DNA of 64,000 nt from Octopus bimaculoides (GCF_001194135.2 NC_068999.1:25706726-25770725), one strand, 5' to 3'; positions 48,101 to 49,378 are shown, counted from the first letter of the stretch. Numbers and translations: made by a program. Notes: generated from the letters alone by a model not told the origin.

Positions 48101-49378
48101 ATGATGAATCTTTAATAGAACATTATTCTTTCTCTCAATTTGGACCTCTCCAAAAGTTTGAATTGTTCTCTTTTGAACTTATTTTTTCCCATATATGTAT
48201 ATATATGTGTATACATATATGTATATATATGTATGTGTGTGTTTGTATATATATCAGATATACTTTTCGTAATGAGATAAAAAAAAAAAACCAAGGCTGT
48301 GTATAATATAGAACATTTATAAATCGAATGTCTTACAGCTGTTTCCAGGATATTTATTATATCTCTTCATCGGAGATGGTGTGAGAGGATGATTAAGCAA
48401 TAGTTAGTTTAGTTAAGATAGGAAACAGAGAGTGAATGTAGGGATAAATCTTATATGTATACTATTCTGCCTAAACAATGGATTTACAAATACAACATCC
48501 CTACATTCACTCTCTGTTTCCTATCTTAACTAAAGTAACTATTGCTTAATCATCCTCTCACACCATCTCCGATGAAGGGATATAATAAATATCCTGGAAA
48601 CAGCTGTAAGACATTCGATTTATAAATGTTCTATATTATACACAGCCTTGGTTTTTTTTTTATCTCATTACGAAAAGTATATCCTATATTCACACGCTCC
48701 ACACCTGCACCCACCTATCATGAAATTTAACTTAATACCATTGTTTGATAGTGAATGTACATTCCTTTTGGCAGATGTTGTTTGTCAGTAAAATTACTTG
48801 CACATCTCAGATGTTTCTTGTCATAGCCAAGTAGTCAGTTACATCAGTCTTAACTCTATCTTAAAACCTATTGCCTTTAACTTTCGTGTATAGTAATGAT
48901 CTATGATCAACTTAAAATCAAGTAGCTAAGCTCTCACCAGAATACCACAGCTACTTTCTTTTACACCTAATATTTAACACTTCATTTTCAACAAACCTCT
49001 CAGAATGAACATCAACTGATGTGTATCTAAGAAAAACAGAATGAACAAGAGATAGTTGATAGCAAAATCTTTTAAACCAATCTCAAACTTACCTTGTCAT
49101 GCAATGTCCAACCAACATACTTCAAGTAGCTATCATCAAGAAACATGTAAGGGTACTTTCGCATCCACACCCCGATCTCTGATGAACATATTGCTCTTAT
49201 TTCTGGCTGGGTGTCCCTGCAAAAATGTCAGCAAATCATCAACCCATGACTTACCTTGTCATGCAATGTCCAACCGACGTACTTTAAGTAGCTATCATCT
49301 AAAAACATATTCGGGTACCTCCGCATCCATACCCCAATTTCTGTTGTACATATTGACCTTATTTCTGGGTGTGTATCT
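6097..49378 (-). CDS. STAG1/2: Cohesin subunit SA/stromalin (STAG1/2 ortholog), multi-exon, 5'-incomplete in window
   Basis: 24 exons with canonical AG/GT boundaries join in consistent phase into 937 codons (using either copy of the duplicated exon). They are collinear with the human STAG1/2 sequence as I recall it: [89 protein letters not shown]. The last two exons are tentative. Confidence 0.97.
7985..8017 (+). mobile_element. Possible Helitron-like 3' terminus
   Basis: tgGGC-aac-GCCgagtatctctgCTAG|T: short hairpin followed by CTAG and T; 5' end not identified. Confidence 0.35.
8473..8499 (-). CDS. STAG1/2: Candidate 27-nt STAG microexon
   Basis: tttttattactcacag|ACCCAACAACTGGAATCCATTGCCTTT|gtaagtt; phase 0/0; TQQLESIAF; no homology support. 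Confidence 0.5.
9981..10131 (-). CDS. STAG1/2: STAG exon (C-terminal tail)
   Basis: 151 nt, atgtag|…|gtaagt; [50 protein letters not shown]; [12 protein letters not shown] resembles human GLMEEDAEPIFED. Confidence 0.85.
11301..11414 (-). CDS. STAG1/2: STAG exon (C-terminal tail)
   Basis: 114 nt, ttccag|…|gtgagt; [37 protein letters not shown]; QMNWL resembles human QMQISWL. Confidence 0.85.
11933..12105 (-). mobile_element. RTE-3'-end-related short element, interrupted by a copy of flanking DNA
   Basis: catcatcgtttaatgtacattttc and ctcccatctgatttggcaagg…ctacagctggatgcccttcctaacgccaaccactcc match the family at 19846, 46235 and 63656. Confidence 0.7.
12188..12425 (-). CDS. STAG1/2: STAG exon (low-complexity C-terminal tail, Ala-rich, NLS-like)
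   Basis: 238 nt, ttgtag|…|gtaagt, phase matches both neighbours; (A)[35 protein letters not shown]…[11 protein letters not shown]…[10 protein letters not shown](S). Confidence 0.9.
13066..13185 (-). mobile_element. RTE-clade reverse transcriptase fragment
   Basis: [24 protein letters not shown] (non-LTR RT DxxKAFD motif). Confidence 0.8.
13490..13668 (-). CDS. STAG1/2: STAG exon
   Basis: 179 nt, ttacag|…|gtaaaa; [59 protein letters not shown]. Confidence 0.94.
14375..14535 (+). mobile_element. RTE-3'-end-related short element
   Basis: …gtccaacccatgccagtatggaatatggacgttaaatgatgatgac tail, same family as the 43.2 kb 3' end. Confidence 0.7.
14743..14874 (-). CDS. STAG1/2: STAG exon
   Basis: 132 nt, ttccag|…|gtaagt; [43 protein letters not shown](V). 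Confidence 0.96.
15058..15134 (-). CDS. STAG1/2: STAG exon
   Basis: 77 nt, tatcag|…|gtaggt; [25 protein letters not shown](K). Confidence 0.96.
15477..15545 (-). CDS. STAG1/2: STAG exon
   Basis: 69 nt, ttacag|…|gtaagt; [23 protein letters not shown]. Confidence 0.94.
15630..15870 (+). mobile_element. 3' end of ORF of an RLE-type non-LTR retrotransposon (HERO-like)
   Basis: …[28 protein letters not shown]…stop resembles the EAAEKASxWLWxKR…W C-terminus I recall for HERO-clade elements. Confidence 0.55.
15909..16080 (+). repeat. 60-bp tandem repeat (about 2.9 units) with E-box-like palindromes, followed by a TATA-like box
   Basis: Units start at 15909, 15969 and 16029 (gacagtgtcaYgtgacaactWgctgg…ctagcagc); TGTCACGTGACA at 16034-16045; atataaaaag at 16081-16090. 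Confidence 0.9.
17101..17224 (+). repeat. (GA)n microsatellite, about 120 bp
   Basis: Direct reading; ends 31 nt from the donor of exon 17256-17357. Confidence 0.98.
17256..17357 (-). CDS. STAG1/2: STAG exon
   Basis: 102 nt, ttttag|…|gtgaga; [34 protein letters not shown]. Confidence 0.96.
18854..18987 (-). CDS. STAG1/2: STAG exon
   Basis: 134 nt, taacag|…|gtaggt; (E)[44 protein letters not shown]. Confidence 0.96.
19457..19845 (+). mobile_element. Mariner 5' fragment (TIR plus N-terminal transposase)
   Basis: gagggggtacccagaag 5' end; [37 protein letters not shown]…[17 protein letters not shown]; truncated by a (CAT)n-tailed insertion. Confidence 0.8.
19846..20049 (-). mobile_element. RTE-3'-end-related element with (CAT)n tail, runs into gap
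   Basis: (cat)n ttaacgtccgttttccatgctggcatgggttgga…ctacagctggatgcccttcc. Confidence 0.85.
21195..21348 (-). CDS. STAG1/2: STAG exon
   Basis: 154 nt, tttcag|…|gttagt; [51 protein letters not shown]. Confidence 0.95.
21834..21926 (-). CDS. STAG1/2: STAG exon
   Basis: 93 nt, ctccag|…|gtaaat; [31 protein letters not shown]. Confidence 0.92.
22150..22495 (-). mobile_element. Composite degraded SINE / RTE-tail fragments
   Basis: ccagatgcccttcctgtcaccaacc and cacttgcccaag…cagtgggact…accacatg…gggaagcaa segments. Confidence 0.6.
23166..23246 (-). CDS. STAG1/2: STAG exon
   Basis: 81 nt, ctgtag|…|gtatgt; [27 protein letters not shown]. Confidence 0.92.
23370..23640 (+). mobile_element. RTE-clade LINE fragment
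   Basis: [10 protein letters not shown]…[14 protein letters not shown]…[23 protein letters not shown], matching the 43.9 kb copy. Confidence 0.9.
24133..24220 (-). CDS. STAG1/2: STAG exon
   Basis: 88 nt, ccacag|…|gtagaa; [29 protein letters not shown]. Confidence 0.94.
24313..24483. repeat. Imperfect foldback element (about 68-bp arms)
   Basis: attattttatgagcttcattagcttacagttgtttctgctatgagatgcag… / …ctgcatcttataacagaaacagctgtaagctactgaagttcataagataat: 45/51 matches in the outer arms. Confidence 0.9.
25537..25607 (-). CDS. STAG1/2: STAG exon
   Basis: 71 nt, tttcag|…|gtaact; [23 protein letters not shown](C). Confidence 0.94.
25671..26340 (+). mobile_element. Three tandem copies of SINE family 1
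   Basis: Same core as at 2636-3180 but in opposite orientation, separated by (TTA)n/(TTG)n. Confidence 0.85.
26660..27240 (-). mobile_element. Hsmar1-like mariner, N-terminal half, disrupted
   Basis: [10 protein letters not shown]…[65 protein letters not shown]…KWVP…[18 protein letters not shown]; ATG at 27143. Confidence 0.9.
27248..27385 (+). mobile_element. SINE family 1, 3' half
   Basis: gaggttgactttgcctttaatcctttcggggtcgataaattaagtaccag…. Confidence 0.8.
27556..27699 (-). CDS. STAG1/2: STAG exon
   Basis: 144 nt, tttcag|…|gtaaga; [48 protein letters not shown]. Confidence 0.95.
29104..29163 (-). CDS. STAG1/2: STAG exon
   Basis: 60 nt, ctgcag|…|gtaagg; [20 protein letters not shown]. 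Confidence 0.94.
31118..31207 (-). CDS. STAG1/2: STAG exon
   Basis: 90 nt, caacag|…|gtaata; [30 protein letters not shown]. Confidence 0.96.
31479..31568 (-). CDS. STAG1/2: STAG exon
   Basis: 90 nt, ttttag|…|gtaaga; [30 protein letters not shown]. Confidence 0.95.
31872..32090 (-). mobile_element. CORE-type SINE family 2, partial
   Basis: ggcttctttcagtttctgtctaccaaatccactcacaaagctttagtcagcccgaggctatagtagaagacacttgccc. Confidence 0.8.
32281..32513. mobile_element. hAT-type MITE (233 bp) with 8-bp TSD
   Basis: TIRs CAGTAGTTCTCAACC / GGTTGATAAACATTG (11/15 match); exact TSD ATGTAAAG at 32273-32280 and 32514-32521. Confidence 0.9.
32722..34516 (+). mobile_element. Degenerate piggyBac-like element (TTAA-flanked) carrying a SINE insertion
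   Basis: TTAA|CCCCTTTTGATAC … GTAACGAAAGGG|TTAA; transposase relic [34 protein letters not shown]…HGLGYDVV…ILFFDRFF at about 33460-33670. The two ends may belong to different elements. Confidence 0.75.
33851..34243 (-). mobile_element. CORE-type tRNA SINE family 2, full length
   Basis: Minus strand: ggagtggctgtgtggtaagtagcttgc…ccgggttcagtcccactgcgtggcaccttgggcaagtgtcttctac…ggtgctccagcatggccgcagtcaaatgactgaaacaagtaaaag. Confidence 0.9.
34550..34653 (-). CDS. STAG1/2: STAG exon
   Basis: 104 nt, gtgtag|…|gtatgg; (S)[34 protein letters not shown]. Confidence 0.95.
35930..36044 (-). CDS. STAG1/2: STAG exon
   Basis: 115 nt, ggttag|…|gtaagt; [38 protein letters not shown]. Confidence 0.96.
36169..36391 (-). 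CDS. STAG1/2: STAG exon
   Basis: 223 nt, ttccag|…|gtaagg; [38 protein letters not shown]…[18 protein letters not shown]. Confidence 0.96.
37530..37643 (+). mobile_element. SINE family 2, 5' part, runs into gap
   Basis: gactgtttggtaagacgttagcttcccaaccacatggttttgggttcagtcccactg…gggcaagtgtctt. Confidence 0.8.
38497..38576 (-). CDS. STAG1/2: STAG exon
   Basis: 80 nt, ttatag|…|gtaaaa; [26 protein letters not shown](R). Confidence 0.96.
38955..39185 (-). mobile_element. tRNA-headed SINE (family 3) with hammerhead-like 3' region
   Basis: A-box-like TAGCATAGTGG (39171-39181) and B-box-like GAGTTTGATTC (39128-39138); tail gacacCTGATGAaggctggagggtatatcagccGAAAtgttatgtt. Confidence 0.7.
39685..39783 (-). 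CDS. STAG1/2: STAG exon
   Basis: 99 nt, ttatag|…|gtaagg; [33 protein letters not shown]. Confidence 0.96.
39825..42800 (+). mobile_element. Penelope-like element (RT plus GIY-YIG), degenerate, antisense to STAG
   Basis: [15 protein letters not shown]…[11 protein letters not shown] (about 40850); [22 protein letters not shown]; [18 protein letters not shown]; [11 protein letters not shown]; [13 protein letters not shown]…LYISETR…EHL (about 42070-42190); many stops and frameshifts. Confidence 0.9.
42885..43290 (+). mobile_element. RTE 3'-UTR-derived element with (GAT/CAT)n tail
   Basis: …ggagcctggtgtagccatctgg…ccaacccatgctagcatggacagcagacgttaaatggtgatgatcatcatc; homologous to 44640-45040. Confidence 0.85.
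43330..45040 (+). mobile_element. 5'-truncated RTE-clade LINE (RT C-terminal half plus 3' UTR), partly in gaps
   Basis: …[34 protein letters not shown]…FRYLGDQV; [14 protein letters not shown]…[17 protein letters not shown]; [13 protein letters not shown]; YADD catalytic motif present, one frameshift near 43990. Confidence 0.95.
45207..46118 (+). mobile_element. Solo LTR (912 bp) inserted in a (TA)n tract
   Basis: Starts TGT, ends ACA; GTCACGTGA at 45370-45378, TATAAATA at 45418-45425, AATAAA at 46026-46031; CpG-rich relative to surroundings; TA repeats on both sides. Confidence 0.7.
46235..46380 (-). mobile_element. RTE-3'-end-related element, truncated
   Basis: (cat)n cgtttcacgtccgctttccatgctagcatgggttggacg…ctacagctggatgcccttc. 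Confidence 0.85.
46498..46615. repeat. Perfect 118-bp palindrome centred on (TA)n
   Basis: ggaaggtacaagtaaaaatatatacatatatacatgcatgc(at)n gcatgcatgtatatatgtatatatttttacttgtaccttcc. Confidence 0.95.
46958..47374 (-). mobile_element. CORE-type SINE family 2, full length
   Basis: Closely similar to 33851-34243. Confidence 0.9.
48257..48683. repeat. Near-perfect inverted repeat, arms 189/187 bp, 51-bp spacer
   Basis: 48257-48445 vs 48497-48683: 2 substitutions and a 2-nt poly-A length difference. Confidence 0.95.
49093..49216 (-). CDS. STAG1/2: STAG SCD exon, copy B (mutually exclusive candidate)
   Basis: 124 nt; acceptor gctgacatttttgcag|G, donor AAG|gtaagt; (R)[41 protein letters not shown]. 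Confidence 0.95.
49255..49378 (-). CDS. STAG1/2: STAG SCD exon, copy A (mutually exclusive candidate)
   Basis: 124 nt; acceptor ctgtactgtttcag|A, donor AAG|gtaagt; (R)[41 protein letters not shown]. Confidence 0.95.

Follow-up and report, generated by a model that had tools for sequence, protein, structure and literature searches.

The 64,000-nucleotide (nt) stretch of Octopus bimaculoides DNA considered here (GCF_001194135.2, NC_068999.1:25706726-25770725; the window in what follows, with positions counted from its first letter) carries, on its minus strand, part of a gene for the cohesin subunit SA in which one coding exon is present twice in tandem. The two copies, exons A and B, are separated by a spacer of 38 nt, and we consider it probable that this duplicated pair is spliced in a mutually exclusive fashion. 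An earlier note on this DNA had proposed that the spacer is too short for A to be joined to B, and that nonsense-mediated decay (NMD) backs up the resulting steric exclusion. Comparison with related loci lends support to part of that proposal, including the retention of the short spacer, and takes away the role that it gave to one particular branch-point motif.

A tandem exon pair in the cohesin SA gene

The duplicated unit consists of three features, listed here in the order of transcription:

49378..49255, minus strand: exon A, 124 nt, phase 1 to 0, encoding (R) + 41 residues
49254..49217, minus strand: spacer, a GT..AG mini-intron of 38 nt that supplies exon A with its donor and exon B with its branch and acceptor region
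49216..49093, minus strand: exon B, 124 nt, phase 1 to 0, encoding (R) + 41 residues

In both copies the first base is the last base of a codon, the last base closes a complete codon, and the frame between them is open. Exon A follows the acceptor tgtttcag/AGATACAC and ends in GACAAG/gtaagt; exon B follows tttttgcag/GGACACCC and ends in GACAAG/gtaagt, such that AAG/GTAAGT donors and YAG acceptors are found on both. The spacer between them reads GTAAGTCATGGGTTGATGATTTGCTGACATTTTTGCAG on the minus strand. The acceptor tract of exon B is the poorer in pyrimidines (59%, vs 77% for exon A), with a run of TTTTT and a tract of 5-6 pyrimidines.

A and B are identical at 103 of 124 nucleotides (83%) and at 35 of 41 amino acids (85%). 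A repeat search around the exon pair recovers a direct repeat of 136 nt at a spacing of 162 nt and 84% identity, though the 162-nt unit is absent from the output of Tandem Repeats Finder. The resemblance is that of a tandem exon copy and lies far beyond chance. The two exons also share the properties by which Pillmann/Hatje and Kollmar predict mutually exclusive exons (PMC5740500), namely the same gene, strand, length and reading-frame phase, together with sequence similarity.

Homology identifies the gene as that of the cohesin subunit SA/STAG/Scc3, with A and B each encoding the core of the stromalin conserved domain (SCD). When joined to the downstream exons, both versions match the SCD family (Pfam PF21581) in full, at 114.9 bits for A (spanning 1-75/75, against a cutoff of 27.5 bits) and 113.7 bits for B, and the same domain is carried by all database relatives in the protein searches. 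A reconstruction of 176 residues is collinear with residues 301-476 of human SA1 and 298-472 of human SA2 from solved structures, and the SA1 and SA2 structure chains are recovered with E values of 1e-64 to 1e-68. The duplicated exon itself corresponds to residues 298-339 of human SA2. The six residue differences between A and B (H/Q, S/A, TT/SS, R/K and N/Y) fall at the SA2-equivalent positions 301, 306, 309, 310, 318 and 321, in the helix that precedes the F/YxF-ligand pocket. That pocket, described as a 'conserved essential surface' (Y297, L329, W334), binds YxF motifs of CTCF and SGO1 (PMC10279526). The equivalents of L329 and W334 lie within the duplicated exon and are identical in A and B.

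Conservation, selection and reading frames

The pair is known in three species belonging to two lineages. Logan contigs from the runs SRR11869394, SRR11869391 and SRR11869384 (L097-L099), reached via the open reading frame (ORF) P0123, contain the pair with introns about 88% identical to those of the window, as expected of a close relative; the spacer in L097 is 38 nt long, differs by one change (A19 to G), and keeps both the CTGAC and the TGA discussed below. The second lineage is represented by the ENA contig ERZ21867824:ctg78259l (L096, the distant relative in what follows), which was reached upstream from an exon-4 match (P0151) through an unrelated called ORF. There, an A-like exon at 5557-5680 and a B-like exon at 5718-5841 flank a spacer of 37 nt (GTAAGTCATGTGATGAGGATCTGTGCCATCTTTTCAG). 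This contig and the window have no interspersed repeats in common and their introns are unalignable; exons e2-e4 encode proteins that are 100% identical from DNA that is about 85% identical, and the proportion of differing synonymous sites (pS), 0.71 to about 1, points to a deep split. The same length, phase, open frames and canonical splice sites recur in both L096 and L097. The pair is not an assembly artefact, because it is present in three independent assemblies, with the same layout in the Logan contigs of all three runs and in the unrelated ENA contig. A third, degenerate exon copy 58 nt 3' of B (a 15-nt match) was also considered and rejected, as tblastn gives two copies and the motif is absent from the distant relative.

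Between the window and the distant relative, the A exons differ at 4 nucleotides and the B exons at 17, while A and B differ from one another at 18-23, and the residues specific to A and to B are kept in each lineage. The closer resemblance of A to A and of B to B implies that the duplication predates the split and that no gene conversion has occurred since. Elsewhere the exon is single: one copy is found in 77 other invertebrate loci, comprising 74 metagenome-derived host loci, which by exon sequence represent several different animal groups, and three loci, L093/L094 and L095, on long contigs of two genomes that are more compact. In all three the exon-intron layout is the same, with upstream exon, SCD exon, e2, e3 and e4.

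The public gene call P0123 is itself a fused 'protein' of 242 residues whose frame runs from intronic sequence across exon A, the spacer and exon B into intronic sequence again. Its Trp at the position of the spacer TGA was set aside as a gene-caller artefact, another genetic code having apparently been chosen for an AT-rich contig; the DNA of L097 keeps the TGA.

The divergence between A and B indicates strong purifying selection on both copies. They differ by 13 synonymous and 7 nonsynonymous changes, which correspond to a synonymous divergence (dS) of about 1.0 and a nonsynonymous divergence (dN) of 0.074 (dN/dS 0.07; synonymous excess p ~8e-6). So low a ratio at a dS of about 1.0 implies an old duplication whose two copies have both remained coding. 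Consistent with this, the protein encoded by exon B has changed at 0 residues relative to the distant relative, and that encoded by exon A at 1 residue (R to K).

The length of the spacer is conserved as well. The earlier note had proposed this as a check, and the outcome is in its favour, with 38 nt in the window, 38 nt in the close relative and 37 nt in the distant one, despite saturation at synonymous sites and flanking introns too diverged to align. Spacer positions 1-10 (GTAAGTCATG) are identical in the three species and the acceptor is conserved; of the remaining positions, 17/28 are identical in the distant relative. That a length of 37-38 nt has been kept, while neighbouring introns diverged past alignment and gained transposons, suggests that spacer length itself is under selection. 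The other SA introns in the window range from 124 nt to more than 9 kb, and the shortest ordinary intron found in the gene (36045-36168, minus strand; 124 nt) is about three times as long as the spacer. That this intron matches the length of the duplicated exon appears to be happenstance.

The reading frames leave a single productive choice. In the window, all combinations but the use of a single exon are non-productive. As 124 is no multiple of three, transcripts that contain both exons, or neither, carry early stops. The joining of A to B, as the earlier note claimed and as translation re-derives, shifts the frame to a TGA at codon 27 of B; the skipping of both, for which the note gave a join of phase 2 to phase 0, likewise shifts the frame and meets a TGA after about 10 codons of the next exon. 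Retention of the spacer preserves the frame by length (38 + 124 = 162 nt), and its sole stop is the TGA at spacer codon 9 (VSHGLMIC-stop). In the distant relative, the frame of A joined to B closes at codon 13 of B, and a retained spacer, which has no TGA inside it, causes a frameshift. The claim that retention is halted by the TGA therefore holds for the window and for L097 and is specific to that lineage; the broader claim, that all outcomes but one exon are non-productive, holds for every outcome in the window and for joint inclusion and spacer retention in the distant relative.

Probable steric exclusion, proposed regulation of exon A and alternative readings

Given this anatomy, mutually exclusive use of A and B appears very likely from the sequence, and analogy with characterized exon pairs makes a steric block its likely cause. 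The U1 and U2 complexes need about 50 nt between a 5' splice site and the branch point, with precedents in alpha-tropomyosin, alpha-actinin and OGDH (PMC7969005); among human clusters of mutually exclusive exons, 9% have a donor-to-branch distance below 50 nt, and 60% have lengths not divisible by 3 (PMC5740500). The pair may have originated in an ancient tandem duplication of 162 bp, comprising the 124-nt exon and a few bases of each flanking intron, in which case the 38-nt spacer would be a fusion of the old donor side with the old acceptor side. Any branch point that serves exon B has to lie within those 38 nt, 15-30 nt from the donor of A, a distance at which the joining of A to B would be prevented. 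The same short RNA would be contested by U1 on the donor of A and U2 on the branch site of B, and the definition of one exon would block that of the other. Transcripts that contain both exons, neither exon, or the spacer would be removed by NMD on account of their early stops, and the expected products are two SA isoforms that differ by six residues in the helix before the pocket, with the pocket residues unchanged.

The spacer length of 38 nt and the CTGAC with its A at intron position 27, on which the earlier note based this geometry, are confirmed in the sequence, and the spacer contains a second candidate:

49227..49231, minus strand: CTGAC, branch-point candidate, with A at 49228 (position 27), 11 nt before AG
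49237..49241, minus strand: TTGAT, alternative branch-point candidate, with A at 49239 (position 16), 22 nt before AG

With an intron of 38 nt in all (37 in the distant relative), any branch point must lie no more than 30 nt from the donor of A, which is under the limit of about 50 nt. The short donor-to-branch geometry thus stands for any candidate A, at 15-30 nt from the donor, while the specific assignment to CTGAC does not. The A at position 16 is the sole branch-like A kept in all three species (TTGAT, TTGAT and ATGAG); its distance to the AG, 21-22 nt, is more typical than that of A27, which is 11 nt, and it may serve as the branch point. By chance, a spacer of this kind would contain CTGAC at least once in about 2% of cases, CTRAY in about 10% and YTNAY in about 50%, and CTGAC alone is weak evidence. 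The arrangement of TPM1, ACTN1 and OGDH, in which a distant branch point is combined with an extended pyrimidine tract and an AG-exclusion zone, is not seen here: no candidate A lies more than 22 nt before the AG, which is too little space for it and places the pair in the 'intron too short' sub-type. Nor do the exons differ in spliceosome class, as would be expected were one of them to carry a U12-type donor (A/GTATCCTT): both donors are GTAAGT.

The two exons are not conserved in the same manner. Exon A differs from its counterpart in the distant relative at 4/124 nt, with 3 synonymous differences over about 23 sites (pS 0.13); exon B, with 17 synonymous differences (pS 0.72), evolves like the constitutive exons, which pooled give 86 differences over about 109 sites (pS ~0.79; each other exon at least 0.71). 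The low pS of exon A is significant both against B (Fisher 9e-5) and against the other exons (4e-9). Conservation extends into the intron upstream of A, where 44/60 nt are identical and the differences are confined to the distal third; the near-invariant block (49255-49417, minus strand, vs 5517-5690 of the distant relative) comprises exon A, about 40 nt upstream and spacer positions 1-10. Near-invariance at synonymous sites is a signature of a regulated alternative exon. The usual cluster of mutually exclusive exons has one ubiquitous exon and one or more regulated ones (PMC5740500), and we infer from the contrast in conservation that B is used by default and that A is the exon under regulation.

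Folding predictions for both lineages also contain two small hairpins:

49391..49417, minus strand: predicted 9-bp hairpin upstream of A, whose loop presents a branch-site-like TTATAAC and in whose 3' arm the polypyrimidine tract begins
49245..49263, minus strand: predicted hairpin CAUGAC-AAGGUAA-GUCAUG, formed around the donor of exon A

The upstream hairpin has a predicted energy of -11.9 kcal/mol in the window and -11.4 in the distant relative (z -3.9 and -3.0), and the three substitutions found among the three species either keep pairing or sit in the loop. The hairpin around the donor has -6.9 and -9.0 kcal/mol, respectively (z -3.0 and -3.9), with a core that is invariant in the three species; the 5' splice site of exon B forms no matching hairpin (-0.6 kcal/mol). 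On these models, both hairpins may tune the recognition of exon A. No larger structure is predicted: the 340-nt region of the pair yields z values of -0.24 and +0.58, and the conserved block around exon A folds no better than shuffled sequence (z -0.18). A look for docking and selector elements of the Dscam type produced one imperfect inverted repeat of 15 nt within 1.5 kb, the multi-kb introns not having been searched for long-range pairing. To this extent, the statement in the earlier note that exclusivity needs no RNA docking structure is in agreement with the local folding.

Several observations weigh against the reading of a sterically enforced exclusive pair. The CTGAC is present in the window and in L097, and the distant relative has CTG-TGCC in its place; the motif cannot, therefore, be the conserved determinant. 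Human ultra-short introns of 37-65 nt are spliced (PMC4463651), such that 38 nt is no absolute bar and the steric block is likely rather than proven. The constraint on spacer length is drawn from a small sample, as three species in two lineages are all that contribute to it, and none of the substitutions in the hairpins is compensatory, which leaves their role at the level of conjecture. Lastly, protein searches with B and the next exon, with A and three exons, and with the A-spacer-B read-through returned no spliced sequence of this clade, yielding SA fragments from distant taxa only. The read-through ORF of the distant relative has no entry in the protein collection, and, of the three word-based searches expected to match P0123, one alone listed it.

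The missing spliced sequence would also be expected if one copy were a decaying pseudo-exon left by the duplication and never included in mRNA, and the short pyrimidine tract of exon B, with its lower pyrimidine content than that of A, could be read in the same way. We regard this as very improbable, however, as both copies retain open frames, consensus splice sites and a length of exactly 124 nt in three species. A pseudo-exon would be expected to have decayed like the unalignable introns; instead, the A-B dN/dS is 0.07 and, at saturated synonymous divergence, the encoded residues of B and A have changed at none and one of their positions, respectively. It is a less remote, if still unlikely, prospect that the pair is exclusive while the 38-nt intron can be spliced, with exclusivity arising at the protein level through frameshift, NMD and trans-acting regulators. 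The human introns cited above are spliced by unorthodox routes (PMC4463651), and reads that join mutually exclusive exons occur in 22% of human clusters with lengths not divisible by three (PMC5740500). Against such a spliceable spacer stand its retention at 37-38 nt, where neighbouring introns have diverged and gained transposons, and the 124 nt of even the shortest ordinary SA intron; nor is the spacer G-rich, unlike most validated human ultra-short introns.

The near-invariance of exon A at synonymous sites could in principle reflect an overlapping function other than splicing. Coleoid cephalopods are known for adenosine-to-inosine (A-to-I) RNA editing, which involves double-stranded RNA structure, and exon A might be conserved as double-stranded RNA for editing, or as an antisense or noncoding element. 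The reach of the conserved block beyond the exon, for about 40 nt on the side of the upstream intron and for 10 nt on that of the spacer, would fit such a function, as would an antisense ORF of 108 codons that spans the region in the window (49056-49382, plus strand, across B, spacer and A). Yet the block does not fold beyond its shuffled counterparts and contains two small local hairpins only; stops break the antisense ORF in the distant relative, for which reason we reject it as a real gene and regard it as probably a by-product of the coding strand; and no Rfam family is matched in the window. We consider an overlapping function quite unlikely. It would, in any event, touch only the layer of regulation and not the exclusive pair itself.

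Surrounding sequence and relation to known systems

Downstream of the pair, homology searches place the following SA exons in the window:

39685..39783, minus strand: next constitutive exon (33 residues), 9.3 kb 3' of exon B
38497..38576, minus strand: SA exon (26 residues listed), from the homology search
36169..36391, minus strand: SA exon, ending in FFIESE and followed by the 124-nt intron
36044-35930, minus strand: SA exon, with further exons beyond

The introns that follow B are thus, in order, 9.3 kb, 1.1 kb, 2.1 kb and 124 nt. The upstream constitutive exon (..FVHRYR) was not found by tblastn in 49379-64000; it could lie beyond position 64000 or within a gap, those at 57.4-59.4 kb being candidates. 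With this exon out of reach, the phase of the upstream junction is taken from the phase of exon A and from outgroup gene structures.

The introns also contain a number of features with no evident bearing on the pair. Within the 9.3-kb intron, 40000-43100 and 43270-43998 (plus strand) are G+C-rich (45-50%) and strongly C-skewed, with long Pro/Ser/Thr-rich open frames without a Pfam match, and are followed by a reverse-transcriptase ORF (RVT_1, with a weak PHD match); this is probably the insertion of a non-long-terminal-repeat (non-LTR) retroelement. Fragments of mariner/Mos1-type transposases (Transposase_1, HTH_48) lie in SA introns at 50655-51348 (plus strand) and 26784-27089 (minus strand). 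A repeat element at 33947-34249 (plus strand) and 55914-56339 (minus strand), encoding RLPN(P/L)LTRLW...GYS(R/K)RHLPKVP..GTEP.TMW, probably belongs to an interspersed family. At 32936-33387, one translated block of 31 residues occurs twice, on either side of a 10-N gap (33112-33121), and looks like a scaffolding artefact at the gap edges. Assembly gaps are present at 20050-20813, 44156-44386, 45041-45140, 57454-57534 and 58724-59423, in addition to several 10-N runs.

The origin of mutually exclusive exons in tandem exon duplication was reportedly described by Kondrashov and Koonin in 2001 and by Letunic, Copley and Bork in 2002. The SA pair is a textbook instance of this process, with no substantive difference from it: a 162-bp unit holds one exon and minimal splice signals, and the two copies are equal in length and phase and 85% identical in protein. 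In its proposed mechanism, the pair resembles exons 2/3 of alpha-tropomyosin (Smith and Nadal-Ginard 1989), the NM/SM exons of alpha-actinin and exons 4a/4b of OGDH (PMC7969005), which are likewise adjacent homologous exons that cannot be joined, with a branch point under the steric limit of about 50 nt and an inter-exon intron long kept short. It differs from them in its dimensions. Those genes have inter-exon introns of some 120-220 nt or longer, in which the branch point is distant and the pyrimidine tract very long, whereas the whole SA intron is 37-38 nt, with candidate branch point, tract and acceptor beside the donor. A second likeness is to the human exons whose exclusivity is backed by frame incompatibility and NMD (Hatje et al. 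2017, PMC5740500), with which the pair has in common a non-divisible length and stops on double inclusion and on skipping; in the window, however, retention of the SA spacer is in frame by length and is stopped only by the TGA, a codon that the distant relative lacks.

The class of mechanism, steric and frame-backed exclusive exons derived from tandem duplication, is therefore already known, and the present observations leave the current understanding of mechanisms unchanged. What is new is the case: we found no report in the literature of an exclusive exon pair in a cohesin SA gene. For the study of splicing, it offers an unusually clean natural example of exclusivity of the 'intron too short to splice' kind, in which one exon has been all but fixed at its synonymous sites. 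For the study of cohesin, the two variants, six residues apart, provide a handle on the helix beside the conserved essential surface.

A further parallel may be drawn with vertebrate STAG1/STAG2 (SA1/SA2). There, too, two versions of SA keep the F/YxF pocket and differ elsewhere; the vertebrate versions arose by duplication of the whole gene, while the SA pair would amount to one alternatively spliced exon with six residue differences and a putative divergence in function. It is conceivable, though we hold it to be doubtful as a whole, that these animals make two SA versions through an ancient, conserved exon switch beside the pocket for CTCF, SGO1 and WAPL-type partners, as a counterpart of the SA1 and SA2 genes, and that the choice is set by hairpins that mask the branch site and donor of exon A, atop the steric and frame constraints. 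More generally, the pair suggests that some invertebrates may diversify SA within the SCD by splicing, as vertebrates have done by gene duplication.

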